From Octopus sinensis (taxonomy: Eukaryota), in contig NC_043020.1 of NCBI RefSeq assembly GCF_006345805.1, positions 25,854,001 to 25,918,000 on the forward strand: a stretch of DNA of 64,000 nt, in the 5' to 3' direction. Shown in pieces: positions 1,105 through 63,056 of this stretch. Position numbers and translations under genes: made by a program. Numbering within the stretch: the first letter of the stretch is position 1; each line of letters opens with the position of its first letter. The notes under the pieces were generated by a model. It was not told the DNA's origin. It saw only the letters and a list, made by a program, of their open reading frames with translations, and searched no databases.

Positions 1105-1200
<96 letters not shown>

Positions 1201-1233
1201 TATATATTATATATATATATATTTATCAATATA
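1045..1233. repeat. (AT)n microsatellite, left flank of the ribozyme array
   Basis: direct reading. Confidence 0.95.
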
Positions 1234-1343
1234 GCGCGAGTGCGACGATTTGGCGCGAGTGCGACGATTTGAAAATTTTAGGTCAGATATTGACTTGGCA
1301 AGATTGGGTATGCCTCGTGTAAATATCTGTTCCGACTTGAGCT

Positions 1344-1450
1344 ATTTCTTGCTGAAGAATCCGAGGGCTTATGGAAGATTGGCTTGATTTAATTTAATCA
1401 GGTTAGTTTACCATTAAACAGCGGATGAAACGGTATACCGTACAAGAAAT
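1344..1450 (+). ncRNA. Type I hammerhead ribozyme 1 (long stem II); predicted cleavage after 1442
   Basis: ATTTCTTG-CTGAAGA-ATCCG-[58 nt]-CGGAT-GAAA-CGG-TATA-CC-GTA/CAAGAAAT; stem I 8 bp, stem II base 5 bp, stem III 4 bp. Confidence 0.88.
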
Positions 1451-1842
1451 TACAGGGTAAATGTTTTTTTAATTTTCTCCTGTTTACGGAATTAATCTTA
1501 TTTGCGGTAAGAGCTTTAGAAGCTTTGGCTGTTATTTCTAGTGGGTGAATGGCCTATTATGGCCGTTCCTTAATTGTTAATGTTGAACTTAAAAATGGTC
1601 TATGACTATTTAATTTTTTCCCACTGGGCCGCTGGTGGCAATAAAATTCTACAAAATTTTCCTTGCCACCCTATATTGATTAATTATGAATTTTTTGGTT
1701 AGTTCCGTAATGGAATCGGCGGCTGATATTTATTTGCTGCCGATAAATTTGGCGCGAGTGCGACGATTTGAAAATTTTAGGTCAGATATTGACTTGGCAA
1801 GATTGGGTATGCCTCGTGTAAATATCTGTTCCGACTTGAGCT

Positions 1843-1948
1843 ATTTCTTGCTGAAGAATCCGAGGGCTTATGGAAGATTGGCTTGATTTAATTAATCAGG
1901 TTAGTTTACCATTAAACAGCGGATGAAACGGTATACCGTACAAGAAAT
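1843..1948 (+). ncRNA. Type I hammerhead ribozyme 2; predicted cleavage after 1940
   Basis: same motif as copy 1, 1-nt deletion in the apical loop of stem II. Confidence 0.87.
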
Positions 1949-2329
1949 TACAGGGTAAATGTTTTTTTAATTTTCTCCTGTTTACGGAATTAATCTTTAT
2001 TTGCGGTAGAAGCTTGGCTGTTATTTCTAGTGGGTGAATGGCCTATTATGGCCGTTCCTTAATTGTTAATGTTGAACTTAAAAATGGTCTATGACTATTT
2101 AATTTTTTCCACTGGGCCGCTGGTGGCAATAAAATTCTACAAAATTTTCCTTGCCACCCTATATTGATTAATTATGAATTTTTGGTTAGTTCCGTAATGG
2201 AATCGACGGCTGATATTTATTTGCTGCCGATAAATTTGGCGCGAGTGCGACGATTTGAAAATTTTAGGTCAGATATTGACTTGGCAAGATTGGGTATGCC
2301 TCGTGTAAATATCTGTTCCGACTTGAGCT

Positions 2330-2436
2330 ATTTCTTGCTGAAGAATCCGAGGGCTTATGGAAGATTGGCTTGATTTAATTTAATCAGGTTAGTTTACCAT
2401 TAAACAGCGGATGAAACGGTATACCGTACAAGAAAT
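2330..2436 (+). ncRNA. Type I hammerhead ribozyme 3; predicted cleavage after 2428
   Basis: same motif as copy 1. Confidence 0.87.
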
Positions 2437-2820
2437 TACAGGGTAAATGTTTTTTTAATTTTCTCCTGTTTACGGAATTAATCTTTATTTGCGGTAGAAG
2501 CTTTGGCTGTTATTTCTAGTGGGTGAATGGCCTATTATGGCCGTTCCTTAATTGTTAATGTTGAACTTAAAAATGGTCTATGACTATTTAATTTTTTCCC
2601 ACTGGGCCGCTGGTGGCAATAAAATTCTACAAAATTTTCCTTGCCACCCTATATTGATTAATTATGAATCTTTTGGTTAGTTCCGTAATGGAATCGACGG
2701 CTGATATTTATTTGCTGCCGATAAATTTGGCGCGAGTGCGACGATTTGAAAATTTTAGGTCAGATATTGACTTGGCAAGATTGGGTATGCCTCGTGTAAA
2801 TATCTGTTCCGACTTGAGCT

Positions 2821-2927
2821 ATTTCTTGCTGAAGAATCCGAGGGCTTATGGAAGATTGGCTTGATTTAACTTAATCAGGTTAGTTTACCATTAAACAGCG
2901 GATGAAACGGTATACCGTACAAGAAAT
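2821..2927 (+). ncRNA. Type I hammerhead ribozyme 4; predicted cleavage after 2919
   Basis: same motif, one T>C in the apical loop of stem II. Confidence 0.87.
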
Positions 2928-3310
2928 TACAGGGTAAATGTTTTTTTAATTTTCTCCTGTTTACGGAATTAATCTTTATTGCGGTAGAAGCTTTGGCTGT
3001 TATTTCTAGTGGGTGAATGGCCTATTATGGCCGTTCCTTAATTGTTAATGTTGAACTTAAAAATGGTCTATGACTATTTAATTTTTTCCCACTGGGCCGC
3101 TGGTGGCAATAAAATTCTACAAAATTTTCCTTGCCACCCTATATTGATTAATTATGAATTTTTTGGTTAGTTCCGTAATGGAATCGGCGGCTGATATTTA
3201 TTTGCTGCCGATAAATTTGGCGCGAGTGCGACGATTTGAAAATTTTAGGTCAGATATTGACTTGGCAAGATTGGGTATGCCTCGTGTAAATATCTGTTCC
3301 GACTTGAGCT

Positions 3311-3417
3311 ATTTCTTGCTGAAGAATCCGAGGGCTTATGGAAGATTGGCTTGATTTAATTTAATCAGGTTAGTTTACCATTAAACAGCGGATGAAACGG
3401 TATACCGTACAAGAAAT
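3311..3417 (+). ncRNA. Type I hammerhead ribozyme 5; predicted cleavage after 3409
   Basis: same motif as copy 1. Confidence 0.87.
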
Positions 3418-3801
3418 TACAGGGTAAATGTTTTTTTAATTTTCTCCTGTTTACGGAATTAATCTTTATTTGCGGTAGAAGCTTTGGCTGTTATTTCTAG
3501 TGGGTGAATGGCCTATTATGGCCGTTCCTTAATTGTTAATGTTGAACTTAAAAATGGTCTATGACTATTTAATTTTTTCCCACTGGGCCGCTGGTGGCAA
3601 TAAAATTCTACAAAATTTTCCTTGCCACCCTATATTGATTAATTATGAATTTTTTGGTTAGTTCCGTAATGGAATCGGCGGCTGATATTTATTTGCTGCC
3701 GATAAATTTGGCGCGAGTGCGACGATTTGAAAATTTTAGGTCAGATATTGACTTGGCAAGATTGGGTATGCCTCGTGTAAATATCTGTTCCGACTTGAGC
3801 T

Positions 3802-3908
3802 ATTTCTTGCTGAAGAATCCGAGGGCTTATGGAAGATTGGCTTGATTTAATTTAATCAGGTTAGTTTACCATTAAACAGCGGATGAAACGGTATACCGTA
3901 CAAGAAAT
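3802..3908 (+). ncRNA. Type I hammerhead ribozyme 6; predicted cleavage after 3900
   Basis: same motif as copy 1. Confidence 0.87.
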
Positions 3909-4289
3909 TACAGGGTAAATGTTTTTTTAATTTTCTCCTGTTTACGGAATTAATCTTTATTTGCGTAGAAGCTTGGCTGTTATTTCTAGTGGGTGAATGG
4001 CCTATTATGGCCGTTCCTTAATTGTTAATGTTGAACTTAAAAATGGTCTATGACTATTTAATTTTTTCCCACTGGGCCGCTGGTGGCAATAAAATTCTAC
4101 AAAATTTTCCTTGCCACCCTATATTGATTAATTATGAATCTTTTGGTTAGTTCCGTAATGGAATCGACGGCTGATATTATTTGCTGCCGATAAATTTGGC
4201 GCGAGTGCGACGATTTGAAAATTTTAGGTCAGATATTGACTTGGCAAGATTGGGTATGCCTCGTGTAAATATCTGTTCCGACTTGAGCT

Positions 4290-4396
4290 ATTTCTTGCTG
4301 AAGAATCCGAGGGCTTATGGAAGATTGGCTTGATTTAATTTAATCAGGTTAGTTTACCATTAAACAGCGGATGAAACGGTATACCGTACAAGAAAT
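4290..4396 (+). ncRNA. Type I hammerhead ribozyme 7; predicted cleavage after 4388
   Basis: same motif as copy 1. Confidence 0.87.
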
Positions 4397-4780
4397 TACA
4401 GGGTAAATGTTTTTTTAATTTTCTCCTGTTTACGGAATTAATCTTTATTTGCGGTAGAAGCTTTGGCTGTTATTTCTAGTGGGTGAATGGCCTATTATGG
4501 CCGTTCCTTAATTGTTAATGTTGAACTTAAAAATGGTCTATGACTATTTAATTTTTTCCCACTGGGCCGCTGGTGGCAATAAAATTCTACAAAATTTTCC
4601 TTGCCACCCTATATTGATTAATTATGAATTTTTTGGTTAGTTCCGTAATGGAATCGACGGCTGATATTTATTTGCTGCCGATAAATTTGGCGCGAGTGCG
4701 ACGATTTGAAAATTTTAGGTCAGATATTGACTTGGCAAGATTGGGTATGCCTCGTGTAAATATCTGTTCCGACTTGAGCT

Positions 4781-4887
4781 ATTTCTTGCTGAAGAATCCG
4801 AGGGCTTATGGAAGATTGGCTTGATTTAATTTAATCAGGTTAGTTTACCATTAAACAGCGGATGAAACGGTATACCGTACAAGAAAT
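4781..4887 (+). ncRNA. Type I hammerhead ribozyme 8; predicted cleavage after 4879
   Basis: same motif as copy 1, in the last partial unit. Confidence 0.87.
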
Positions 4888-5004
4888 TACAGGGTAAATG
4901 TTTTTTTAATTTTCTCCTGTTTACGGAATTAATCTTTATTTGCGGTAGAAGATTTGGCTGTTATTTCTAGTGGGTGAATGGCCTATTATGGCCGTTCCTT
5001 AATG

Positions 5005-5009
<5 letters not shown>

Positions 5010-5099
<90 letters not shown>

Positions 5100-5139
5100 A
5101 TATATATATATATATATATAAATATATTATATATATATA

Positions 5140-5184
<45 letters not shown>

Positions 5185-5200
5185 ATATATATATTATATA

Positions 5201-5237
<37 letters not shown>

Positions 5238-9438: not shown

Positions 9439-10247
9439 TTTTGCGCCAATATATATATACACATATATTTATGTATACGTACATGTATATATACATATGT
9501 CTGTATACTGATATTTGAGCTAAAAGCGTTTGAACTTCGGCTTTTAATAGAAAGAAAACAAAAACCTACCGGGACATTGGCGTTTGGCAATGATACAGCA
9601 GGCCAAATCATTTAGAGAAATATAAATTTAATCACATCAGGTAAAACGAAATGAGCAGAGGAGGATTAAAATTAAAGGAGATTAAGTGTACAGCTCGTTT
9701 CATTGTTTCACCAGGCTGTGTATTTATAGTGATAAATATTGTATGTGGTTAAATGATCTAAGGTCTATTTTTCAGCATATTGGCATAGAAAGTTTCTTCT
9801 TTTGCCCTTATTTATAATTGTTTATATTTTCACCTTGATATATATTTTAATATGCTGGCTACTGATAAAATTATTTTTCGAAAATGTTACCCATATATTA
9901 GATGTATATTCATATATATTTAAAAGTGAAAGGGGTATAACAAACTGGCCTTTTAGAGGGGGATATCCAATGTTTCGAATGTAATCTTCCGTCAGATGGT
10001 AGAGAAAAAAGAGAAATTTGCATCCACTCATCTTGAAAAACTGACAGCCAATTTTTCAAACCGAGAGGATGTAAACGCTATCTTACTTCAACTTCTCTTT
10101 TACTCTACCCGCTGACAGCCAATTACAACAGAAACATTGGATATTCCACTCTTTGCAGCAAGTTCACTGTACTCCTATATTTTTCTATATTTTCCGAGTC
10201 TTGCCGACGCAGAGCTACACAGGATACCTTATAGTTTGCCTGATTAT

Positions 10248-10282
<35 letters not shown>

Positions 10283-10354
10283 CAATTATGTATCTATAAT
10301 TATTCATATATATAATTATACATCCATATATACATACATACTATTATGTATGTA

Positions 10355-10924
10355 TATATATATAGTCTTTGACTATTTTTTCTTTCTCGCTAGACCGCTG
10401 GTGGCGATAAATTTCTATTGAATTCTTTGCTACCCTATATTGATTAATTGATGTTTTTCTGACTAATTCTGAAATTGAATCAGCAGTTTATATTTACTGC
10501 TGATAAGTTGGCGCGAGTACGATGGTTTTGAAAATTTTAGGGCAGATATTCCTAGGGCATAGATACAGATGCCTCGTGTATATCCGTCTCTCCTGGCCTC
10601 TTTACCGACGAGGTGTAGCCTTTGGTGGATTGACTTGATTTAATTTAATTAAGCTGGTTTGCCATTAAAAACACCGAAACGATGCATTGTCTAAAGATGA
10701 TTTAGGGGAAATGTTTTAAATTTTCTCTAATTTCTGAATTACTACTACTTGACGGTTTGAGTCCTGGCTGCTCTTTCTAGTGGGTCGAATGGCCTATTAA
10801 GGCCATTCCTCAATTGTTGTTGAATTTATATATATAGTCTTTGACTATTTTCTCTTTCTCACTAGACCGCTGGTGGCGATAAATTTCTATTGAATTTTTT
10901 GCTACCCTATATTGATTAATTGAT
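10355..10924 (+). mobile_element. Diverged relative of the 490-bp unit, about 1.2 units with 472-bp period, inside (TA)n; second retrozyme subfamily
   Basis: shares ccgctggtggc, ccctatattgattaatt, ggcgcgagt, tttgaaaattttagg, atgcctcgtgta, cttgatttaatttaat, gaatggcctatta; about 95-bp terminal redundancy (tagtcttt at 10363 and 10835). Confidence 0.85.
10599..10697 (+). ncRNA. Type I hammerhead ribozyme with long stem II, U4C core variant; predicted cleavage after 10691
   Basis: TCTTTA-CCGACGA-GGTGT-[54 nt]-ACACC-GAAA-CGA-TGCA-TT-GTC/TAAAGA. Confidence 0.82.
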
Positions 10925-10938
10925 TTAAATATATATAT

Positions 10939-10992
<54 letters not shown>

Positions 10993-11376
10993 TGTATGTA
11001 TGTATGTATATATGTATGTATGTATAGTCCAGAAATGGGATCCAGAGTTTTTCAGTATAGAAGACAGTTATTATTGCTCAAAGATTCAATCTTGGGCTCC
11101 AATATCTTTACATGTGATTAATTCCACGAGGAAAAAAAAAGCTAATTAGAAGGATCAAGTTGAGCGGATATAAATACAAAATATAACAGTTTGGGCATGA
11201 AGTACAAAAAATATATATATATATATTAAACATGAAAAACGAGAGAAAGCAAAAGATGGAGACTTTCAGACGATGAATATGTAAGTATAAATATATTAGT
11301 ATTTATATTAATAACTCCAACTTACTCAAAGTGCAAACGACAGATAGAATTAAAGGTGTGCAATAAAGATGGTATG

Positions 11377-37835: not shown

Positions 37836-40502
37836 CAAATTTGCTTCCATTTCTTGCCGAGTGTCTTCCCGACTCCTAGGGCAAAGAAACTCATCGTATA
37901 CATTGGTAGGCCATTAAACTAAACTCACTAGTTCGTTCATTTTTTTTTTTTAAGTTAAATTAAAATACATGGGGAGTAATAGTTCTCACAGCGACAATGC
38001 TGTTCTCAATACGTGTGATGTACCAGTTAAGACTATCTTTTGCACTTCTTGCAGGGATGGTAAGCCATGGATCATTCTCATGTAATTTTCGGTTCCCTTC
38101 TTGATCATTCCTAGTGCTCCTACGATCACTGGTATTGTAACCGCCTTGAGATGCCACATTTTCTCAATTTCAATGAGCAGGTCTTTATATTTTCTGAGCT
38201 TGTCAAACTCTTTCGCCGAGATATTATGATCACAGGGGATGCTCATGTCGATCAATAAGCAAACTTTATTGTTTTTGTCTTGCACAACAATATCTGGTTT
38301 ATTGGTTTTCATGGTTCGGTCTGTATGTACTGGAAAGTCCCACAGAATCGTTACATTTTCTCCTTCATTTACAGCTTCAGGGTGGTGATTATACCATTTG
38401 TCGGCAGGTTTGATATTGTAATGCCGACTTATTAGCCAGTGTAGATATTGGCCAACTCTGTCATGATTTAATTTATACTCCACTGGTGCTAAGACTTTAC
38501 ATCCAGAGATTAGGTGGTCCACTGTTTCAATCATGTCATTGCAGAATCGGCATTTTGGGTCTGCTCCATTTTTCATCACATTGGCCTGGTAGTTCTGGGT
38601 TAATAGGCTTTGATCTTGAGCAGCCAGGATGAAACATTCGCTCTCTGCTTTTAGCCCTGAGCTCCGTAGCCACTGATGGGTTTGCTTCTGGTCAACATCT
38701 GCTTGTTTGCTACGGGCCACATATTTGCCGTGCAGAGGTTTCTCCTCCCACATATCAGCCAATTGCTCGTGCGCTTTTTTCATTGCCATCATTTTCACCT
38801 TCTTTGCAACAATAGTTGCCGTACTTCCCTCGGGTTGTTCAGTTTGGGTATCCTACACGAGATCAATAGCAAATTTTTTGCTTTCCTTTATGATAGAATG
38901 AAGCTTCTTTCGTCTCTCGTGATTTTCATTATTTCAAGATATTTGGCCAGTCCAATTGTGGTTGTTTTGTAAGCTAGTTCAAACTGGATCAGGCCTCGAC
39001 CTCCTTGGGCTCTGGGAAGGTAAAGGCGATCTACGTCTGCCTTTGGGTGGTGCATCCTATTACAACTCAGCAGCTTGCGTATTTTCCTGTCTATATTCTT
39101 TACTTCACTCGTATTCCAGTTCAACACATCGTAGCTACAAGTAACAACTGGAACTGCTAAGGAATTTATAGCTAACACCTTGTTACGTGCATTTAGTTCA
39201 GATTTCAGGACTGCACGAACTCTCCTATAACATTCCTTCCTGATCTTCTCTTTCATGCTTGCATGCTGAATACCAGAGCCTTCATTTATCCCTAAATATT
39301 TGTATGTTTGTTCTTGCTCAAGCTCTCTTATGACTGTGTCAACATCTAACACGACTGAATTTGTGGTCTTCACTTTCCCTTTCTGGAAAGTAGCCTTGGC
39401 ACACTTCTCAGTCCAAACTCCCATCCCGATGTCATCGCTGAATGCTTTCACAGTGCACAATAGGCCTTCAAGTTCATTATTGTCTTTACTATAAAGTTTT
39501 AAGTCATCCTATAAAATAGATGGCTTATTTTTTTATTGGCAATTTTATATCCATACCCTGTTCTGTTTACTTCACTTGTAAGGGGTATTAGGGATGCAGA
39601 ATATTAAAGGTGAAAGTGAGTCACCTTGAAAAATTTCACAGTTGATGTTTATATTTTCTGAGGCAGTACTCCATTAGAGTGGTATAATTGGAGATTCGTA
39701 TTCCACAACGACATATTGTGCTTCAGGAAGCTTGAAATCACAGGGAAATTTTGAAGATATCCAGCGATCTCAAGATCCATGGATGCGGTATACTGTCGAA
39801 GGCCTTTTTATAGTCAATCCATGCGGTGCTGAGGTTTCTGCGTCTGCGCTTGTTGTGACAGTTCTCAAGGATCATACGATTATTAGCAGTTGATCTTTGC
39901 ATCCGTAAGAGCCTCGGCGGCACCCTTTTTGTTCAATGGGGAAAATATCGTTCTTCTCCATGAATGCATATGTTTTCTCCGCCAGGATAGATGTTAGGAT
40001 TTTATACGTGGTGGATGACAGGTTATAGGCCGATAGTTTTTTGGAAGGTTGGTTTCGTTATTCTTTGAGAGTAGGTAAGTATACCACTTGCTAACCATTC
40101 AGCCATTCAGGTTTTTCTCTGGGTCTCTCATAATTCCATTGAGCAGCTGAACTAGCTTAACGTGTGCGCATAGGAGCGATGCGAGCCAGAAATTCGCACC
40201 CTATCTTTACCGGGGGATTTCCAATTATATGTCTTCGTGAGTGCCTTTCTTAGGTCTGCTATTGTGATGTCTTCCCATGCTTGTTGTTGTAAATTCTGGT
40301 AGGATCCTTCAGTTTGTATGATCCAGTCTGCATTTGTGTTGTACGTCTTCTTGTCACTCCAAATCCTTTTCCAAATGTTTTGAACTTCTTCCATGGGAGG
40401 GGGGGTCTTTAACGGTTACTTTCTCCTTCCCTATTTCTCTGTAGAATTTTTTGGCATTGGATGTAAACTGCCTATTTTGCTTGTAAAATTTGTTTCTCTT
40501 CT
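37836..40502 (-). mobile_element. R4/Dong-clade non-LTR retrotransposon, subfamily 1, copy A (5'-truncated, frameshifted)
   Basis: RT fragments, CCHC knuckle CRFC...HLISGC, REL motif KPDIVV...LIDMSIP; 3' end abuts (AAC/AAT)n. Confidence 0.9.
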
Positions 40503-40540
40503 TCTTCTTCTTCTTATTATTATTATTATTATTATTATTA

Positions 40541-40586
<46 letters not shown>

Positions 40587-40614
40587 TCATTATTATTATT
40601 TTTTTTTCTTCTTT

Positions 40615-43296
40615 CAAATTTGCTTCCATTTCTTTCCGAGTGTCTTCCCGACTCCTAGGGCAAAGAAACTCATCGTATACATTGGTAGGCCATTAAACCA
40701 AACTCATAGTTCGTTCATTTTTTTTTTTTTTTTTTTAAGTTAAATTAAATACATGAGCAGCAACAATTCTCACATCGACAATGCTCTTCTCAATACGTGT
40801 GATGTACCAGTTAAGACAATCTTTTGCACTTCTTGCAGGATGGTAAGCCAGGGATCATTCTCATATAATTTTCGGTTCCCTTCTTGATCATTCCTAGTGC
40901 TCCTACGATCACTGGTATTGTAACCGCCTTGAGATGCCACATTTTCTCAATTTCAATGAGCAGGTCTTTATATTTTCTGAGCTTGTCAAACTCTTTCGCT
41001 GAGATATTATGATCACAGGGGATGCTCATGTCGATCAATAAGCAAACTTTATTGTTTTGGTCTTTCACAACAATATCTGGTTTATTGGCCTTGATGGTTC
41101 GGTCTGTATGTACTGGAAAGTCCCACAGAATCGTTACATTTTCTCCTTCAGTTACAGCCTCAGGGTGGTGATTATACACTTGTCGGCAGTTTTGATATTG
41201 TAATGCCGATTATTAGCCAGTGTAGATATTGGCCAACTCTGTCATGTCTTAATTTATACTCCACTGGTGCTAAGACTTTACATCCAGAGATTAGATGGTC
41301 CACTGTTTCAATCATGTCGTTGCAGAATCGGCATTTTGGGTCTGCTCATTTTTCATCACATTGGCCTGGTAATTCCGGGTTAATAGGCTTTGATCTTGAG
41401 CAGCCAGGATGAAACATTCGCTCTCTGCTTTTAGCCCTGAGCTCCGTAGCCACTGATGGGTTTGCTTCTGGTCAACATCAGCTTGTTTGCTGCGGGTCAC
41501 ATATTTGTCGTGCAGGGGTTTCTCCTCCCACATATCAGCCAATTGCTCGTGCGCTTTTTTCGTTGCCATCATTTTCACCTTCTTTGCAACAATAGTTGCC
41601 GTACTTCCCTCGGTTTGTTCAGTTTGGGTATCCTGCACGAGATCAATAGCAAATTGTTTGCTTTCCTTTATGATAGAATGAAGCTTCTTTCGCCTCTCAT
41701 GATTTTCCACGAGCTTTAGCATCCAGTCATTCGATATTTCGAGATATTTGGCCAGTCCAATTGTGGTTGTTTTGTAAGCTAGTTCAAACTGGATCAGGCC
41801 TCGACCTCCTTGGGCTCTGGGAAGGTAAAGGCGATCTACGTCTGCCTTTGGGTGGTGCATCCTATTACAACTCAGCAGCTTGCGTATTTTCCTGTCTATA
41901 TTCTTTACTTCACTCGTATTCCAGTTCAACACATTGTAGCTACAAGTAACAACTGGAACTGCTAAGGAATTTATAGCTAACACCTTGTTACGTGCATTTA
42001 GTTCAGATTTCAGGACTGCACGAACTCTCCTATAACATTCCTTCCTGATCTTCTCTTTCATGCTTGCATGCTGAATACCAGAGCCTTCATTTATCCTTAA
42101 TATTTGTATGTTTGTTCTTGCTCAAGCTCTCTTATGACTGTGTCAACATCTAACACGACTGAATTTGTGGTCTTCACTTTCCCTTCTGGAAAGTAGCCTT
42201 GGCACACTCTCAAGTCCAAACTCCATCCCGATGTCATCGCTGAATGCTTTCACAGTGCACAATAGGCCTTCAAGTTCATTATTGTCTTTACTATAAAGTT
42301 TTAAGTCATCCATATAAAATAGATGGCTTATTTTTTTATTGGCAATTTTATATCCATACCCTGTTCTGTTTACTTCACTTGTAAGGGGTATTAGGGCTAT
42401 GCAGAATTTTAAAGGTGAAAGTGAGTCACGTTGAAAAATTCCACAGTTGATGTTTATATTTTCTGAGGCAAGTACTCCATTAGAGTGGTATAATTGGAGA
42501 TTCGTATTCCACAACGACATATTGTGCTTCAGGAAGCTTGAAATCACAGGGGAAATTTTGAAGATGTCCAGCGATCTCAAGATCCATGGATGCGGTATAC
42601 TGTCGAAGGCCTTTTTATAGTCAATCCATGCGGAGCTGAGATTCTGCGCTTGTTGTGACAGTTCTCAAGATCATACGATTAATTAGCAGTTGATCTTTGC
42701 ATCCGTAAGAGCCTCGGCGGCAACCTTTTTGTTCAATGGGGAAAATATCGTTCTTCTCCATGAATGCATATGTTTTCTCCGCCAGGATAGATGTTAGGAT
42801 TTTATACGTGGTGGATAGACAGGTTATAGGCCGATAGTTTTTTGGAAGGTTGGTTTCGTTATTCTTTGGGAGTAGGTAAGTAATACCACTTGCTAACCAT
42901 TCAGGTGTTTTCTCTGGGTCTCTCATAATTCCATTGAGCAGCTGAACTAGCTTACCGTGTGCGCATAGGAGCGATGCGAGCCAGAAATTCGCACCCTATC
43001 TTTACCGGGGGATTTCCAATTATATGTCTTCGTGAGTGCCTTTCTTAGGTCTGCTATTGTGATGTCTTCCCATGCTTGTTGTTGTAAATTCTGGTAGGAT
43101 CCTTCAGTTTGTATGATCCAGTCTGCATTTGTGTTGTACGTCTTCTTGTCACTCCAAATCCTTTTCCAAATGTTTTGAACTTCTTCCATGGGAGGGGGGG
43201 TCTTTACGGTTACTTTCTCCTTCCCTATTTCTCTGTAGAATTTTTTGGCATTGGATGTAAACTGCCTATTTTGCTTGTAAAATTTGTTTCTCTTCT
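40615..43296 (-). mobile_element. R4/Dong-clade copy, chimera of copy B (3' part) and copy A (5' part)
   Basis: same 5' truncation point as A; 3' SNPs and indel state match B. Confidence 0.88.
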
Positions 43297-43308
43297 TCTT
43301 CTTCTTCT

Positions 43309-43367
<59 letters not shown>

Positions 43368-43394
43368 CTTTATTATTATTTTTTTTTCTTCTTT

Positions 43395-46300
43395 CAATTT
43401 GCTTCCATTTCTTTCATTTCTTGCCGAGTGTCTTCCCGACTCCTAGGGCAAAGAAACTCATCGTATACATTGGTAGGCCATTAAACCAAACTCAATAGTT
43501 CGTTCATTTTTTTTTTTTTTTTTTAAGTTAAATTAAAATACATGAGCAGCAACAATTCTCACATCGACAATGCTCTTCTCAATACGTGTGATGTACCAGT
43601 TAAGACATCTTTTGCACTTCTTGCAGGGATGGTAAGCCAGGGATCATTCTCATATAATTTTCGGTTCCCTTCTTGATCATTCCTAGTGCTCCTACGATCA
43701 CTGGTATTGTAACCGCCTTGAGATGCCACATTTTCTCAATTTCAATGAGCAGGTCTTTATATTTTCTGAGCTTGTCAAACTCTTTCGCTGAGATATTATG
43801 ATCACAGGGGATGCTCATGTCGATCAATAAGCAAACTTTATTGTTTTGGTCTTTCACAACAATATCTGGTTTATTAGCCTTGATGGTTCGGTCTGTATGT
43901 ACTGGAAAGTCCCACAGAATCGTTACATTTTCTCCTTCAGTTACAGCCTCAGGGTGGTGATTATACCACTTGTCGGCAGTTTTGATATTGTAATGCCGAA
44001 TTATTAGCCAGTGTAGATATGGGCCAACTCTGTCATGTCTTAATTTATACTCCACTGGTGCAAAGACTTTACATCCAGAGATTAGATGGTCCACTGTTTC
44101 AATCATGTCGTTGCAGAATCGGCATTTTGGGTCTGCTCCATTTTTCATCACATTGGCCTGGTAGTTCCGGGTTAATAGGCTTTGATCTTGAGCAGCCAGG
44201 ATGAAACATTCGCTCTCTGCTTTTAGCCCTGAGCTCCGTAGCCACTGATGGGTTTGCTTCTGGTCAACATCAGCTTGTTTGCTGCGGGTCACATATTTGT
44301 CGTGCAGGGGTTTCTCCTCCCACATATCAGCCAATTGCTCGTGCGCTTTTTTCGTTGCCATCATTTTCACCTTCTTTGCAACAATAGTTGCCGTACTTCC
44401 CTCGGTTTGTTCAGTTTGGGTATCCTGCACGAGATCAATAGCAAATTTTTTGCTTTCCTTTATGATAGAATGAAGCTTCTTTCGCCTCTCATGATTTTCC
44501 ACGAGCTTTAGCATCCAGTCATTCGATATTTCGAGATATTTGGCCAGTCCAATTGTGGTTGTTTTGTAAGCTAGTTCAAACTGGATCAGGCCTCGACCTC
44601 CTTGGGCTCTGGGAAGGTAAAGGCGATCTACGTCTGCCTTTGGGTGGTGCATCCTATTACAACTCAGCAGCTTGCGTATTTTCCTGTCTATTCTTTACTT
44701 ACTTCACTCGTATTCCAGTTCAACACATTGTAGCTACAAGTAACAACTGGAACTGCTAAGGAATTTATAGCTAACAACACCTTGTTACGTGCATTTAGTT
44801 CAGATTTCAGGACTGCACGAACTCTCCTATAACATTCCTTCCTGATCTTCTCTTTCATGCTTGCATGCTGAATACCAGAGCCTTCATTTATCCCTAAATA
44901 TTTGTATGTTTGTTCTTGCTCAAGCTCTCTTATGACTGTGTCAACATCTAACACGACTGAATTTGTGGTCTTCACTTTCCCTTTCTGGAAAGTAGCCTTG
45001 GCACACTTCTCAAGTCCAAACTCCATCCCGATGTCATCGCTGAATGCTTTCACAGTGCACAATAGGCCTTCAAGTTCATTATTGTCTTTACTATAAAGTT
45101 TTAAGTCATCCATATAAAATAGATGGCTTATTTTTTTATTGGCAATTTTATATCCATACCCTGTTCTGTTTACTTCACTTGTAAGGGGTATTAGGGCTAT
45201 GCAGAATATTAAAGGTGAAAGTGAGTCACCTTGAAAAATTTCACAGTTGATGTTTATATTTTCTGAGGCAAGTACTCCATTAGAAGGGTATAATTGGAGA
45301 TTCGTATTCCATAACGACATATTGTGCTTCAGGAAGTTTGAAATCACAGGGAAATTTTGAAGATGTCCAGCGATCTCAAGATCCATGGATGCGGTATACT
45401 GTCGAAGGCCTTTTTATAGTCAATCCATGCGGTGCTGAGATTTCTGCTGCGCTTGTTGTGACAGTTCTCAAGGATCATACGATTGATTAGCAGTTGATCT
45501 TTGCATCCGTAAGAGCCTCGGCGGCACCCTTTTTGTTCAATGGGGAAAATATCGTTCTTCTCCATGAATGCATATGTTTTCTCCGCCAGGATAGATGTTA
45601 GGATTTTATACGTGGTGGATAGACAGGTTATAGGCCGATAGTTTTTTGGAAGGTTGGTTTCGTTATTCTTTGGGAGTAGGTAAGTAATGCCACTTGCATT
45701 CAGGTGTTTTCTTTGGGTCTCTCATAATTCCATTGAGCTGCTGAACTAGCTTACCGTGTGCGCATGAGCGCGATGCGAGCCAGAAATTCGGCACCCTATC
45801 TTTACCGGGGGATTTCCAATTATGGGCCTTCGTGAGTGCCTTTCTTAGGTCTGTTATTGTGATGTCTTCCCATGCTTGTTGTAAATTTTGGTAGGATCCT
45901 TCAGTTTGTATGATCCAGTCTGCATTTATGTTGTACGTCTTCTTGTCACTCCAAATACTTTTCCAAAAGTTTTGAACTTCTTCCATGGGAGGGGGGTCTT
46001 TAACGGTTACTTTCTCCTTCCCTATTTCTCCGTAGAATTTTTTGGCATTGGATGTGAACAGCTTATTTTGCTTGTAAAACTTGTTTCTCTTCTCTTCTCA
46101 ATCTTCGTATTCTTTGGGCTTTTGCTTGGACTTTTTGTTTCAGCTTTCTTTTATTGATATCAGTTCTTCTCTTGGTGAGGATCTAAATTTTCTCTCTTCA
46201 TCTTTCTTCCTGTTCTGGATCTTACATCATTTCCACATATTAGTTCATTTAATATTGATATTTCCCCTCTCATAAATTCAATCTCTTTTTCAATTTTACT

Positions 46301-47852: not shown

Positions 47853-48752
47853 GAAGGGCTGTTCTGTATTGTTTGTGAATAGAGAAGTTGTGTTCGACCA
47901 GAGAGAATCTTAGCATCATCATTTTTTTTTTCCATGTGCGTTTGTGTTATTGCAATAAAAAGTGTTTGTATATTTCGTGTAAGGTAATATTGTGGAGGTT
48001 GAAGTTGACTTTTCTAGAGATGTTTGTATGTCCAGTTAGAAGAACAGGTGTGTTTTTGCAATAAAAAGTATATGTTTACATTTATATTTGAATATTCTGG
48101 GAGGAAGCAAAGAAAAGTCAGATTTTCATAGAAAGTTTTAGGGTTTTGTAAGTCCACAAAAAGAAAAGCGTGATGTTTTTAGAGAGAAGGAAAAAAAAGG
48201 ATGTTTACAGAGGCAATTGTGGGTATCAAAGTTTTTAAAGCTGGTCGAATGTATGATTGAAAACTGTAGATATGTAAATTTGTAAATTTTCTTAACTTAT
48301 TTTGAAGGGCTGTTCTGTATTATTCGTGAATAGAGAAGCTGTGTTCGACCAGAGAGAATCTTAGCATCATTATTTTTTCCATGTGCGTTTGTGTTATTGC
48401 AATAAAAAGTGTTTGTATATTTCGTGCAAGGTAATATTGTGGAGATTGAAGTTGACCCCTCTAGAGATGTTTGTATGTCCAGTTAGAAGAACAGGTGTGT
48501 TTTTGCAATAAAAAGTATGTTTACATTTATATTTGAATATTCTGGGAGGAAGCAAAGAAAAGTCAGATTTTCATAGAAAGTTTTAGGGTTTTGCAAGTCG
48601 ACAAAAAGAAAAGCGTGATGTTTTTAGAGAGAAGAAAAAAAAAGGGTGCTTACAGAGGCAGTTGTGGGTATTAAAGTTTTTAAAGCCGATCGGATGTATG
48701 TTTGAAAGCTGCAGATATGTAAATTTGTTAATTTCTTAACCCACTTTGAAGA
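47853..48752 (+). repeat. Tandem dimer of a 451-bp unit
   Basis: gaagggctgttctgtatt at 47853 and 48304; colinear throughout with scattered substitutions. Confidence 0.9.
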
Positions 48753-49047: not shown

Positions 49048-52000
49048 TTATTGTATGGAAAGTGCTCTGCGTAGGATGTGTGCAGTGCCTAGTAGTGCAA
49101 TTTTCTGTATGTTATATGTGTTTGTAAGTCCTGGTGTTTTTGTTATGTATTTGTCTGAATATTTTTTTATGATGCCTAATGCACCTACTATGATAGGAAT
49201 TGTTTCTGTTTTCAGATTCCACATTCTAGTTACCTCTATTTCCAGGTCTTTGTATTTTGAGAGTTTCTCCATTTCTTTTAGAGACACGTTGTTATCAGCC
49301 GGTATTGATACATCAATTAGAAAGCATTTTTTTTCTTCATGATCTCTGACAACTATATCTGGTCTGTTGGCCTTAATTTCTCTATCTGTGTGTATCGGCA
49401 TATCCCAGAGTATGGTTGCTTTCTCGTTTTCTGTGACCTTTTCTGGTGTGTGCCTATACCATCTTTTTTCTGTTGTTATTCCATAATGTTGGCATAGCTT
49501 CCAATGTATGTAGGTTCCAACTCTGTCATGTCTGTGAATATATTCCTTCTTAGCCAAGACTGGGCAGCTAGAGATATGATTTATTGTTTCTTGTCCATCT
49601 CCACATATTCTGCAGTTACTTGTAATATTTCTTTTCATTACATGTTTTTGGTAATTTCTGGTGGGGAGGCTTTGGTCTTGTGCTGCAATTAAAAATCCCT
49701 CTGTTTCTGCTTTGAGTCCTGAGCTTCTCAACCATTGCTGGGATTTTTCTTTGTCTATTTCTTTTGCGTTTAGTTTAGTCCAGTATTTACCATGGAGGGG
49801 CTTTTCTTGCCATCGTTTTATCATGGTTCGTTGCTGTTCTATTTTTAGTTTGGATTTCATTTGTTTTATAGCTTTTGTTGTTTCTTCATCTTCTTCTTCA
49901 TCTTCATGTTTATTAGGTGGTATGATTTCTTGTTTGTATTTGTCAGCTTCCTTAAATACTGAGAACAGTTTTTTGTTTTGCTCGTGTTTTGCCGCTATCT
50001 GGATCAGTTTTCCTTCCTTCTGAAGTAGATATTTTTGCAGTCCTATGGTGGTTATTTTATAGTAGTTTTCCAGCTGTATAAGGCCTCTACCACCTTCTAT
50101 ACGTTGTATATATAGTCTTTCTATGTCAGATTTTGGGTGATGCATCCTAGATCCTGTCATTATTTTTCTTGTTTTCCTATCTATTTTGGTCAGTTCATTT
50201 CGTGTCCAGTTAAGGATATTGTAGCTGTAACTTATAACTGGGACAGCTAAAGTGTTGATACCTATTATCTTGTTTTTAGTATTGAGCTCTGTGTTTAGTA
50301 TTGATCTAACTCGTCTATAATATTCTTTTTTTATTTTCTCTTTCATTTGTGTGTGTTGTGTCTTATCTAGTTCATGGATTCCTAAGTATTTGTAAGTTTG
50401 GCTTTGGTCTAATTCTTTTATTTCATTGGTTTTATCTAGTGTGATGTTGTTACTCTTAACTAGTTTTCCTCTTTTCAGGGTTACTTTGGCGCATTTTTCT
50501 AATCCAAATTTCATATCTATTTCTTTGGTAAATCCATGAACTGTCTTTAATAGTGTTTCCAGCTGTTTGTCATTTGCAGCGTATAGTTTTAGGTCATCCA
50601 TATATAAAAGGTGGCTGATCGTTTTGCCGTAACATTTATATCCGCATCCAGTTCTATTTAGCATATAAGATAGAGGTGACAGTGCCAAGCAGAAAAGGAG
50701 TGGAGAGAGCGTGTCTCCCTGGAATATTCCTCTTCTAATGGGGATGTATTTGGTTTTCATGAGTCCCTCTTTTGTTTGGAGGTGTAGGACTGTTTGCCAT
50801 TTATTCATAGAGTGCTCTATGAATTTTATGATTGTTGGTGCTACTTTGTTAATGGCTAGTGTTTCGAGGATCCATGTGTGGGGGATGCTATCAAACGCCT
50901 TTTTGTAGTCAATCCAGGCCATACTGAGGCCTTTCTTCTTTCTGTGGCTGTCTTCAGTTATGGCTTTATTAATCATTAGTTGATCTTTACAGCCATATGA
51001 GCCTTTGCGGCATCCTTTCTGCTCTTCTGGGAACAGTTTGTTTTCGTCCAGGTGCTTGTTCAGCCTTTGTGATATCACTGCAGTAAATGCCTTGAACATA
51101 GTAGGGAGGCAGGTTATTGGTCTGTAGTTTTCTGGTTTTTCTGTTTCATTTGATTTGGGAATTAAGATGGTTTTCCCCTTCGTGAGCCATTCAGGCATTG
51201 TCTCTGGCTCTGCTAGTACTTTGTTAAAGTTTTCAGCCAGCTTTTTGTGCATTCCTGTTAGATATTTCAACCAGAAGTTGGGGATCTTGTCATGCCCAGG
51301 TGCCTTCCAGTTGCTTAGTCTTTGCAGTGCCTGGGTGACCTCTTCAGTTGTTATGGGGGTCCAAAGTTGTTCAGATGCCGAGTTTGTTATTCTGATACTC
51401 CTTTTTTTTGGTGGTTCGTTCGCCGACCATATTTCTCCCCAGAATTCTTCCAATTCTTCTGCCGTTGGTGCTGCAGTGACTTCTATTTTATTTTTTCCCA
51501 GTTCTTGGTAGAACTTTTGGGGGTTAGAGTTGAACTTTTTGTTTTCTTCAAAGAAGCGTTGGCGTTTCTTGTACCGGCGGATCCTTTGTGCTTTGGCAAG
51601 TATATCTTGCTTCAGCTTTTCTTTTATTTCAGGCAAATCTTTCTCTGTGATGTTATATTTGCGGAGTATTTTTGTTCTCTTTTTGTTGCTCAGTAGCGTT
51701 GATTGTTTGCTGATTTCATTAAGAATCGACAGGTCTTTTCTAATTTTTTTTATTTTGCTTTGGATGTTATTTATCCACAGGGTTTGTTTGGGTGGTGGTA
51801 CTCCTGTTTGGGCGGGTTTGGGTAAGTATCCAGCTTCTTTTGTGGCTGCAGTGGCTGCTGCGTATATTAGGTTATTTAGCTCAGTGATATCACTTTTTTT
51901 TTATTTAGTGGCTATCAGTTCAGTGACGGCTAGGTTTATGCTGTTTATAATAGGTGTTGTTATTTTGTTTATTTTGATTCTTGGGAGGTATGGTCGGTGG

Positions 52001-52682
52001 TCCATTTTGGGCTCTGTGGTTTTCAGTTCTTTGATTATTTTATTTTTTATATTATCATAATCATTAGGCTCCCCTTCGTTGTTTACATCGTGTTTGTTGG
52101 GAATGTTGCGTTTGTCTTCGTGTTTCACAGTTTCAGTGTTTATATTATTGGGCATTGTTGTGTGGCTTCTATCTACATTTTCCTGGTGTATGTTTTTTTT
52201 TAGGTGTTCTATTTCTATTTCTGATATTTTTTTGTGTTGAGAATGTATCTTCGTACGTTAGCTAATTTATTAGGGTTCATTGCTGTATCCAAGTCTATAT
52301 CTCTATTATTTTCCTTCCATATTTTATATGTATGTGTTGTATTTTCATTTTTTGGGTAGAGTACTGCTGTGAAGTATGCGTGTAAGATAGAAATGTATTC
52401 CTCACGTGTCCATTTACGTCTTTTGGGTTTTATTTGCGGGACATGAGGTACAACGTCCGGCCCATTATTTTGACGGTCGTCATTTTCGTAGGGTACCGGT
52501 CCGTTTATTTCTGTTGTCACATTATTTCGCACGTGTAGTTTTTCGTACATTTTTTGTTGTAAGTTTAATGTTATAAGTTTATTGTTATTCTTGGGTTGAA
52601 TAGTATCGGTGGCATTTAATTTCTTCGTAGTTCCTTTGTACATGGTGTTTGGGGTCGGAGATGATCGTGATGTTCCACGCAT
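49048..52682 (-). CDS. R4-clade RT/REL-endonuclease polyprotein (~1210 aa once a 1-bp frameshift at the T7 run 52227-52233 and an in-frame TAA at 51901-51903 are bridged; open from 51900 to 49048)
   Basis: RRKWTREEY; DITELNNLIYAAA; YRPITCL; GIFQGDTLSPLLF; LLYMDDLKLY; CRICGDGQETINHISSC; RPDIVV...LIDVSIP...KYKDL. Confidence 0.85.
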
Positions 52683-52883
52683 GTTTACATGTGTTGCGTT
52701 AGAGGCGGAGATGATATCGAGTCAAAATATATCATTTCGTTTCGAAAATAATAATAAATTTCAATTAGTATTACTTACTCGGATACAGTCCAATTCTTTG
52801 TTAGTAAAACTTTGGCTCCATAGGATGTCCTTGTTTTCGATGTTTGTGGATAGATTTCGGAGCTCTGAATTTTCCTTCTTACA

Positions 52884-52992
52884 TCTTAAACGTCCCCGGT
52901 GTTCCTCTTAAACGTCCCCGGTGTTCTCTTAAACGTCCCCGGTGTTCCTCTTAAACGTCCCCAGTGTTCTCTTAAACGTCCCCGGTGTTCTC

Positions 52993-52994
<2 letters not shown>
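52884..52994 (-). repeat. Five 21/22-bp monomers at the 5' end of the R4 element
   Basis: tcttaaacgtccccggtgttc(c) starting at 52884, 52906, 52927, 52949, 52970. Confidence 0.95.
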
Positions 52995-53047
<53 letters not shown>

Positions 53048-61849: not shown

Positions 61850-62578
61850 AACAATCACAGATTATTCTAATATGAGAGTTTTGCATGAAATCCGTGGTCG
61901 TTTTGGGAGTAATTTAGCTTGCAATTATTACTGAAAACCCTTGTACGTAACTATTATTTGATGAGACTAATAAAAGGTTCGCCATTAATTTCCTAACCAC
62001 CCGTGTTGCATTTAGTTGTCTGCGATTATTTCTAGCAACTCATTCCACCGCATACAGACCTTCCCAATTTAGTTCAGCACCAACACAACCTCATGCCAAT
62101 TACGTTATATAAATATGACAGCAACATCAAGTAATACCATACAACGATGGAATAATAATGACATGAACAGCAGATGATACAAACATCAGTATGACAAGCA
62201 ACAATGGAATAACAACGTCACAAACAGCAGAAACTGCGAAATGACTTTCCAACAATGGACGTTGCTATCCTGTCTCCAATTAGAAGAACTGATTGTTGAC
62301 AATCCAATAACATTTCACCGTAATGCATTCTATATTCTACAATATATTTAGCATTCCGGCAAATCTTCTACACTATCGTACAATAAATGTTAACAAGTTA
62401 TTAAATTATAATGTCTTGGCCAGAAAACTATATAATGTCTTTATATATATAAAGCTGAAGTTGTCTGTGTATGGCAGGTTTGGTAGTCTTCAACTAACAC
62501 TATCTCCTCCAAGACCCTGCGGCACAAGTTGACCAAAGTTGATAGTAGGATAGAAGAAGGCTTGCTCTTCATTCCGTA
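61201..62578. repeat. ~330-bp inverted repeat (61201-61534 vs 62256-62578) containing a Helitron 5' end plus its upstream flank
   Basis: tggacgttgctatcctgtctccaattagaagaac...tataaagctgaagtt...ttccgta occurs on opposite strands. Confidence 0.9.
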
Positions 62579-63056
62579 GAAGGAAAAATTCAAATCGGAC
62601 CATGTTAAGACTAAAAATTATTTACATCAAAAAGGTGCTTTTTTGCTATGAAAATCCCTATTTTTCACTATTTATAAAGCTGAAGTTGTCTGTGTGTGTG
62701 TGTGGCAGGTTTGGTAGCCTTCAACTAACACTATCTCTTCCGAAACCCTGCGCCGCAAGTTGATCAAAATTGAGAGTATGATAGAAGGTTTACTCTTCAT
62801 TCTGTAGAAGAAAAAATTCAAATTGGACCATGTTAACACCAAAAATCATTTACATCAAAAAGGTGCTTTTCTTCTATGAAAATCCCTATATTTTACGACA
62901 TTTTGACTGCTGTGTCGTTTTTTACGGTCTATTTCAACGAGAAAAATATTCACTTAAAGAGAATAACAAGCTACATAATGCAAAATTTTTACTTTTCAAA
63001 AGTTCCAGTTCTAAAAGGTTGAAACTAACCCGAGCAACGCTTGGCGATACTGCTAG
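62438..63056 (+). mobile_element. Non-autonomous Helitron with an internally duplicated 5' segment (225-bp period)
   Basis: 5' TC(T)TTATATATATAAAG; 3' hairpin ccgagc-aac-gcttgg (63030-63044) then CTAG (63053-63056) followed by T; the inverted copy retains the A|TC junction at 61346/61345. Confidence 0.82.

Follow-up and report, generated by a model that had tools for sequence, protein, structure and literature searches.

A tandem array of candidate hammerhead ribozymes resembling non-LTR retrozymes on Octopus sinensis contig NC_043020.1

Non-LTR retrozymes have recently been recognised as abundant producers of small circular RNAs in animals; what mobilises them and which function they serve is still debated. 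They consist of short tandem repeats of 150–450 bp that carry type-I hammerhead ribozymes, are low in GC and lack long terminal repeats (LTRs), a primer-binding site (PBS) and a polypurine tract (PPT) (PMC7229834). Here, we describe a tandem array on the + strand at positions 1234–5009 of a 64,000-nucleotide stretch of DNA (the window) taken from the Octopus sinensis assembly GCF_006345805.1 (contig NC_043020.1, positions 25,854,001 to 25,918,000). The array repeats a 491-bp non-coding unit 7.7 times and contains eight complete hammerhead motifs. It is probably a non-coding retroelement belonging to the non-LTR retrozymes, that is, a hammerhead-bearing satellite.

Retrozyme-like repeats have already been reported in molluscs and crustaceans. 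The metazoan type-I motif usually has a helix I of ~6 bp, a helix II of ~4 bp whose small loop contacts loop 1, a helix III of 1–2 bp and a highly conserved G10.1–C11.1 pair (PMC4209133). A palindromic helix III and loop 3 are a hallmark of these hammerheads and permit a double hammerhead in tandem transcripts (PMC4209133). A motif is recognised by a perfect helix topology together with the boxes CUGANGA/GAAAY/RUH (PMC7229834 supplement), and a retrozyme is defined operationally as an array called by Tandem Repeats Finder (TRF) with at least two consecutive units containing the complete motif and a minimum free energy (MFE) below −5 kcal/mol (10.64898/2026.07.22.740005). In the same survey, units range from 51 to 972 bp and arrays mostly have seven units or fewer. 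Penelope-like elements (PLEs) have been proposed as mobilisers, and even as progenitors, of animal retrozymes. Among them, Naiad elements have a strong insertion bias for (TA)n, and a microsatellite bias is hypothesised for Neptune; insertion into (TA)n hides target-site duplications (PMC8557442).

The tandem array and its hammerhead motif

The array was delimited by TRF, unit alignment and the unit consensus. TRF calls it at 1248–5009 with a period of 491, 7.7 copies and 98% matches. The 5′ junction is irregular, with a 19-bp direct duplication at the edge (GCGCGAGTGCGACGATTTG twice, 1234–1271, + strand; TRF period 19, 2.0 copies, 100%). Counted from the cleavage site, the array starts near unit position 283 and ends near position 130. 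The unit has a GC content of 36.5%, and its longest open reading frame (ORF) encodes 69 aa; a recurring, spurious 66-aa ORF has no homologue in a collection of 5.8 billion proteins. The + strand monomer, folded as a circle, has a predicted MFE of −144.5 kcal/mol with 59% of its bases paired (z = −6.1, 60 shuffles). Except for the second copy described below, the rest of the window has no similarity to the unit in blastn and nhmmer searches. Inspection by eye for Pol III A/B-box-like motifs gave none that was convincing and none that is kept in the diverged copy.

A preliminary description of the locus had placed a complete hammerhead in each of eight unit copies. An exact search for the string ATTTCTTG-CTGAAGA-ATCCG-(insert)-CGGAT-GAAA-CGGTATACCG-TA-CAAGAAAT finds all eight at the positions given there, on the + strand, and none in 100 shuffles. 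Copy 1 occupies 1344–1450, with a predicted cut after A1442. It consists of helix I (1344–1351/1443–1450, 8 bp), the core CUGAAGA (1352–1358), helix II (1359–1363/1422–1426, a 5-bp base plus a 58-nt extension), GAAA (1427–1430) and helix III (1430–1433/1438–1441, loop UAUA), all on the + strand. The remaining copies lie, on the same strand, at 1843–1948, 2330–2436, 2821–2927, 3311–3417, 3802–3908, 4290–4396 and 4781–4887 (copies 2–8), with predicted cuts after 1940, 2428, 2919, 3409, 3900, 4388 and 4879. The eight cut coordinates agree with those proposed earlier, and their spacing reproduces the seven predicted monomers of 488–498 nt (498, 488, 491, 490, 491, 488 and 491 nt). Likewise, the 8-bp stem I, the CUGANGA/GAAA core, the 5-bp base of stem II, the 4-bp stem III and the GUA triplet were all recovered by the string search and by the descriptor described below. 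Only the claim of a 58-nt insert in every copy needs correction, in that it holds for seven copies and copy 2 has a 57-nt helix II extension owing to a one-T deletion. Copy 4 has a T-to-C change in the helix II insert, and the changes in copies 2 and 4 are both located in the apical loop of helix II.

In the standard numbering, every copy contains C3-U4-G5-A6-A7-G8-A9, G12-A13-A14, the pair A15.1–U16.1 and A17. The boxes CUGAAGA, GAAAC and GUA, all within the published consensus, are present in 8/8 array copies. Helix I has 8 bp and the base of helix II has 5 bp; helix III has 4 bp, including the 15.1–16.1 pair, and is closed by a UAUA loop. Helix III lies within ACGGUAUACCGU, a perfect 12-nt palindrome, and thus has the palindromic helix III and loop of metazoan type-I hammerheads. 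Helix II spans 68 nt, made up of the 5-bp base and a 58-nt irregular hairpin.

The 107-nt motif contains 2 variant sites within the array, compared with ~13 elsewhere in the unit. Among units 1–7 (1443–4879), a T deletion near unit position 83 is common to units 2 and 6, a C at unit position 251 is common to units 3 and 6, and unit position 278 is split 3:4 between G and A. The other differences between units are mostly 1-nt indels in homopolymer runs and could be assembly errors.

A motif search with a relaxed stem II, suggested in the preliminary description, was carried out with a type-I descriptor that specifies CUGANGA, GAAA, A15.1–U16.1 and H17, stems I/II/III of at least 4/3/3 bp, a helix II span of up to 110 nt and a minimum loop length. 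It gives eight matches in the window, all within the array, and none when both strands of 300 dinucleotide-preserving shuffles of the complete 64-kb sequence are searched. A very loose descriptor (3/2/2) matches a mean of 0.13 times per shuffle. Extrapolation from this rate over ten further base pairs puts the chance rate for the 8/5/4 geometry at roughly 1e-5 per window. The descriptor places the ribozyme on the + strand only, and Rfam detects no other ribozyme family on either strand.

The unconstrained MFE fold of 1335–1460 is the hammerhead three-way junction itself, with an energy of −38.9 kcal/mol (z = −5.3; 0/200 shuffles as good), and the pair probabilities of the three stems are 0.80–1.0 in the local context. 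In the MFE structure of an 801-nt two-unit transcript (3200–4000), the 12-nt palindromes containing helix III in the two neighbouring units are paired with each other and the strands of helix I are sequestered, a fold that suggests a double hammerhead or a regulatory alternative structure.

Diverged second copy and insertion context

A second insertion, absent from the preliminary description, is located on the + strand at 10362–10925. It comprises ~1.15 units and is 73% identical to the array unit by pairwise alignment (blastn E = 1e-38; nhmmer E = 7e-62). Its sequence begins near unit position 145, crosses the cleavage site and stops near position 245. Direct inspection and a pair-by-pair comparison reveal a hammerhead relic at 10597–10699 (+ strand). 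Helix I is formed by 10597–10604/10692–10699, followed by the core CCGACGA (10605–10611), in which U4 is changed to C, helix II (GGUGU, 10612–10616, and ACACC, 10671–10675), GAAA (10676–10679), helix III (10679–10682/10687–10690, loop UGCA) and a cleavage triplet GUC that ends at 10691.

The two hammerheads align without gaps beside the core boxes, and differ substantially in the sequence of all three helices. Helix I is CCUCUUUA/UAAAGAUG in the diverged copy and AUUUCUUG/CAAGAAAU in the main array, helix II is GGUGU/ACACC versus AUCCG/CGGAU, and helix III is ACGA/UUGU with a UGCA loop versus ACGG/CCGU with a UAUA loop. The cleavage triplets are GUC and GUA, respectively. The helix III region of the diverged copy, ACGAUGCAUUGU, is near-palindromic, and its 10.1–11.1 pair is the canonical G–C.

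These differences were analysed in a gap-free comparison anchored on the core, with sliding and randomisation as controls. Between the main and the diverged hammerhead, five of the 17 helix pairs are unchanged, one has a single compatible change, ten have double compensatory changes and one is broken. Pairing in register is thus kept at 16/17 positions, compared with 4–8/17 when the 3′ partners are slid by 1–4 nt. The probability that at least 10 of the 11 double-changed pairs would still pair under random replacement is P = 0.0036. This pattern is the signature expected if selection kept the three helices while the subfamilies diverged, read here from only two independent lineages. The 14-bp distal stem of the 58-nt helix II hairpin is also largely kept in the diverged copy.

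The diverged hammerhead has probably been inactivated. Its first box, CCGACGA, departs from CUGANGA, while GAAAC and GUC are present. The MFE structure of the diverged copy is not a hammerhead (z = −1.9), and keeps helices I and II but not helix III. It is the U4-to-C change at a position where the published motif has an invariant U, together with the loss of the hammerhead from the MFE structure, that leads us to regard this copy as a relic.

Both insertions are embedded in AT-rich microsatellites. TRF finds (AT)n tracts to the left (1051–1226) and right (5008–5237) of the main array, which presumably represent the two halves of the target tract; the right one directly abuts the array at the junction ...GTTAAT|ATATAT. 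The diverged copy is flanked by a (TA)n-type tract on the left (10245–10364) and an (AT)n tract on the right (10929–11026), both also called by TRF. Tracts of the (AT)n type make up 8.7% of the window with the two insertions removed, so that the probability of both landing inside such a tract is P ~0.008. The 3′ ends of both insertions stop at ...AT against (AT)n, and their start and end phases differ. We infer that these features fit the integration of a cDNA longer than one unit, for which circular or multimeric RNA was the template and microhomology at a nicked (TA)n provided the priming. The window contains two separate insertions, representing two subfamilies, within 64 kb.

Simple repeats of period ≤6 called by TRF account for 15.7% of the window, or 14% if only perfect runs are counted, with (AT)n, (TAA)n, (TC)n, (AC)n and (ATAG)n as the predominant types. 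So high a microsatellite load is typical of penaeid shrimp genomes and could serve as a lead to the host lineage. Rfam matches to mir-297 and mir-3149 within 5011–5100 score at most 35.6 bits, against gathering thresholds of 90–100, and are low-complexity (AT)n/(AC)n artefacts.

Class assignment and alternative explanations

With eight consecutive units containing complete hammerheads and an MFE of −38.9 kcal/mol, the array falls under the operational retrozyme definition, which is applied here to a 68-nt helix II; the pipeline of that preprint (10.64898/2026.07.22.740005) uses an rnabob descriptor. The 491-bp unit and the 7.7 copies are within the ranges of the same survey. The unit is non-coding, and its GC content is below the 45–50% typical of the class; the predicted monomer circle is highly self-paired. 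The array is bounded directly by microsatellite rather than by LTRs; no explicit search for a PBS or PPT was made. The assignment to the non-LTR retrozymes put forward in the preliminary description is therefore backed by motif integrity, the chance statistics, covariation, the published definition, low GC, the non-coding unit and the structured monomer. Self-cleavage, transcription, circularisation and the mobiliser are inferred from the sequence.

In the mechanism we propose, a multimeric + strand transcript would fold each hammerhead locally during synthesis, and cleavage after GUA would release monomers of 488–498 nt with 5′-OH and 2′,3′-cyclic phosphate ends. The palindromic helix III may let neighbouring units form a double hammerhead. 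Circularisation of the monomers into highly base-paired circles would then fall to a host tRNA-type ligase (RtcB-like). A reverse transcriptase acting in trans could copy such a circle repeatedly and integrate the product, giving arrays with arbitrary start and end phases. This enzyme would most likely be that of a Penelope-like element, with a GIY-YIG endonuclease preferring (TA)n. The copy at 10362–10925 would be an older insertion of a sister subfamily, presumably inactivated by the U4-to-C change in its core. Mobilisation by a LINE (long interspersed nuclear element), in the manner of a SINE (short interspersed nuclear element), was considered and rejected; the unit has no similarity to the LINE copies or to other parts of the window.

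Several observations weigh against the retrozyme assignment or against an active ribozyme. The 10.1–11.1 pair of the array hammerheads is A–U rather than G–C, and the architecture departs from that of canonical metazoan motifs in its 68-nt helix II, uninterrupted 8-bp helix I and stable 4-bp helix III. The canonical loop 1–loop 2 contact is not recognisable in the array hammerheads and, because of this and of the 68-nt helix II, the cleavage rate is not predictable. These departures lower confidence in fast cleavage without excluding cleavage. Furthermore, the MFE structure of the 801-nt transcript does not contain helix I, since alternative pairings win. The single hammerhead would therefore be a local, presumably co-transcriptional fold, and the predicted activity depends on co-transcriptional folding. 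The mature monomer would accordingly be predicted to prefer a non-cleaving structure, as has also been described for viroids and satellite hammerheads (PMC4209133).

The model searches were also negative. Rfam detects no hammerhead in the whole window at the gathering score, or in 1200–5100 at E ≤ 10, and no other ribozyme family in either search. A covariance model (R1) built from three validated retrozyme hammerheads (coral, mussel and axolotl; PMC7229834 supplement), with Ax330 left out, has no match in the array, and its best matches elsewhere are noise at ~9 bits. The R1 result is judged uninformative, as the model puts a heavy penalty on the 58-nt insertion and on the stems that differ, and the helix II insertion, together with the divergent stems, is probably what made both Rfam and R1 miss the motif. 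The motif is therefore not fully canonical, as seen in the 10.1–11.1 pair, the length of helix II, the loop–loop contact and the Rfam and R1 scores.

Comparison of the copies adds further points on the same side. The core is mutated in the only relative found, and stretches such as CCGCTGGTGGC, CCCTATATTGATTAATT and TTTGAAAATTTTAGG are better conserved than the hammerhead between the main and diverged copies. Variation within the array is too sparse for a test of selection and is uninformative in this respect. Finally, a search of the window found no Penelope-like element, the reverse transcriptases there being of the LINE type.

Other explanations of the locus were also weighed. Under one of them, the array derives from a past retrozyme but is now only satellite DNA, silent and maintained or expanded at the DNA level by unequal crossing-over or replication slippage, with hammerheads that are intact because they are young. 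The 98% identity of the units, which differ mostly by 1-nt homopolymer indels, would indeed leave too little time for decay, purifying selection within the array cannot be shown, variants common to non-adjacent units are what DNA-level exchange would give, and a promoter was not identified. We nevertheless consider this explanation unlikely. Two independent insertions with different phases, both in (TA)n, are indicative of insertion events rather than of local expansion alone, the compensatory evolution shows that the ribozyme was under selection during subfamily divergence, and high, constitutive expression has been published for members of the class (PMC7229834). An origin of the array as a piece of a Penelope-like element, with tandemised pseudo-LTRs bearing their own hammerhead, instead of as a separate retrozyme family, is improbable too. 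The repeats flanking PLEs carry type-I hammerheads, form tandems and prefer microsatellites (PMC4209133, PMC8557442), and Xenopus retrozymes are sister to pseudo-LTR sequences (10.64898/2026.07.22.740005). In the present case, however, the units are neither separated nor flanked by a reverse transcriptase (RT)/GIY-YIG ORF, ORFs within and adjoining both copies encode at most 69 aa, and the sole reverse transcriptases of the window are LINE-type and 33–47 kb away. Moreover, the unit is similar to nothing else in the window except the second copy, and metazoan PLE hammerheads are minimal, with helix III absent or of 1 bp and helix I of 4–5 bp (PMC4209133), compared with 4 bp and 8 bp here. If retrozymes are PLE derivatives, this explanation overlaps with the retrozyme assignment.

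An exogenous viroid-like or circular RNA replicon that became endogenised would account for a small, non-coding, highly structured unit with a hammerhead in a multimeric head-to-tail arrangement. It deserves very little credence, since the ribozyme is present in one polarity only, other ribozyme families are not detected on either strand, two insertions of diverged subfamilies occur in one 64-kb window, and the low GC and type-I motif with a palindromic helix III are typical of genomic metazoan elements. As for a hammerhead-like motif arising by chance in an ordinary satellite, the failure of the covariance models and the non-canonical 10.1–11.1 pair would be in line with such an origin. This explanation is effectively refuted by the lack of any match in 300 shuffles with loose stems, the rate of ~1e-5 per window for 8/5/4 stems, the identity of the motif with the MFE structure (z = −5.3), the ten compensatory double changes in a 73%-identical relative and a context that is exactly that known for such ribozymes.

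The retrozyme assignment could be extended to the tentative proposal, which we hold to be possible but on the doubtful side, of an undescribed retrozyme lineage that is characterised by a 68-nt helix II, has been overlooked by curated covariance models and perhaps by descriptor pipelines, and is mobilised by a PLE targeting (TA)n. Two DNA patterns, one with helix II left free and the other built on the blocks conserved between the subfamilies, retrieved no relatives from metagenome, viral and prokaryotic-genome collections. Sequence strings of the unit gave only one, unrelated primer-like match in the full-text literature.

The remaining features of the window are other repeats. LINE family 1 consists of three adjacent, partly degraded copies on the − strand (37986–45386), with ORFs encoding RVT_1 and zf-RVT domains at 37986–39460, 40811–42580 and 43600–45386. 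Its best named relatives are from Penaeus indicus (60–64%), followed by Clytia, Nothobranchius and Exaiptasia, and a 96%-identical fragment is present in an ENA metagenome contig. LINE family 2 occupies 49048–52995 and contains an uninterrupted 862-aa RT ORF with RVT_1 and zf-RVT domains (49048–51636, − strand), which apparently lacks the N-terminal part of its ~1200-aa relatives. The best database identity of this RT is 54–57%, and its named relatives at 46–47% are from Diaphorina, Penaeus chinensis and Pediculus. A 155-aa ORF (52215–52682, − strand) is located upstream of the RT, and a 21-bp minisatellite, TCTTAAACGTCCCCGGTGTTC, is present in 5.2 copies at 52884–52995. No mollusc is found among the matches listed for the LINE proteins, which lend no support to the cephalopod host proposed in the preliminary description, although relatedness among LINEs is a poor guide to taxon. 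Neither of two more tandem duplications, with units of 445 bp (47853–48751; 2.0 copies, 92%) and 228 bp (62462–62894; 1.9 copies, 87%), is related to the hammerhead unit or contains a hammerhead matching the descriptor.

Significance and comparison with known systems

The two neighbouring subfamilies provide a textbook case of compensatory evolution in all three hammerhead helices. The architecture of the array motif, with its long helix II, stable palindromic helix III and A–U pair at 10.1–11.1, is invisible to Rfam, so that surveys based on such models would under-count elements of this kind. The location of both insertions in (TA)n matches the target preference of some PLEs and supports the mobilisation of retrozymes by PLEs. 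Should the proposed lineage prove real, retrozymes with a long helix II would be systematically under-counted in animal genomes, and the landing in (TA)n with ...AT junctions would constitute direct sequence-level evidence for integration by a GIY-YIG PLE of the Naiad or Neptune type, tying a non-autonomous element to a specific mobiliser. No description of hammerheads or retrozymes in cephalopods was found in the literature searched, and if the host is a cephalopod, this would be the first retrozyme reported in that class. Overall, the known picture is extended rather than changed.

Compared with Hammerhead_1 and related Rfam families, the array motif has the same catalytic core and three-helix junction by direct inspection, but does not match them at E ≤ 10. 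The PLE pseudo-LTR hammerheads (PMC4209133, PMC8557442) are similar in being type-I, in having a larger-than-usual helix II and a palindromic 15.2–16.2 pair and loop 3, and in being arranged in tandem and inserted into microsatellites, (TA)n among them. Unlike PLEs, the locus described here has no RT/GIY-YIG ORF.

The closest parallels are Mg353 of Mytilus galloprovincialis and Amil224 of Acropora millepora (PMC7229834), which also carry one type-I hammerhead per unit, on one strand. They share with the present array a low GC content, the lack of ORFs and LTRs, the CUGANGA/GAAAC/GUH core and a monomer circle predicted to be highly paired (PMC7229834). A palindromic tetraloop on helix III is likewise common to all of them, with UAUA and UGCA here versus the published GUAC and GCGC (PMC7229834). 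Outside the core, the array motif does not resemble the coral, mussel or axolotl motifs in sequence. The units of Mg353 and Amil224 are also shorter (~170–400 nt versus 491), their helix II has 3–4 bp and a 5–7-nt loop in place of the 68-nt span, helix III has 2–3 bp instead of 4 bp, and the 10.1–11.1 pair is G–C instead of A–U. Expression and circularity have been shown for those elements and are predicted for the present array. The mussel motif resembles the array motif in having no recognisable canonical loop–loop contact; it still cleaves without the archetypal loop contacts.

Satellite 2 of newt and axolotl (HHR_Amex1/2) is comparable in its satellite organisation, its type-I motif and a palindromic helix III and loop that permit a double hammerhead. 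The helix III of the amphibian motifs has 1–2 bp and their activity depends on dimerisation, whereas that of the array is predicted to be stable enough for a monomeric fold. HHR_Amex2, which is active, has a U–U mismatch at 10.1–11.1. Therefore, the G10.1–C11.1 pair is not an absolute feature, and a helix II base other than G–C is common to both this ribozyme and the array hammerheads.

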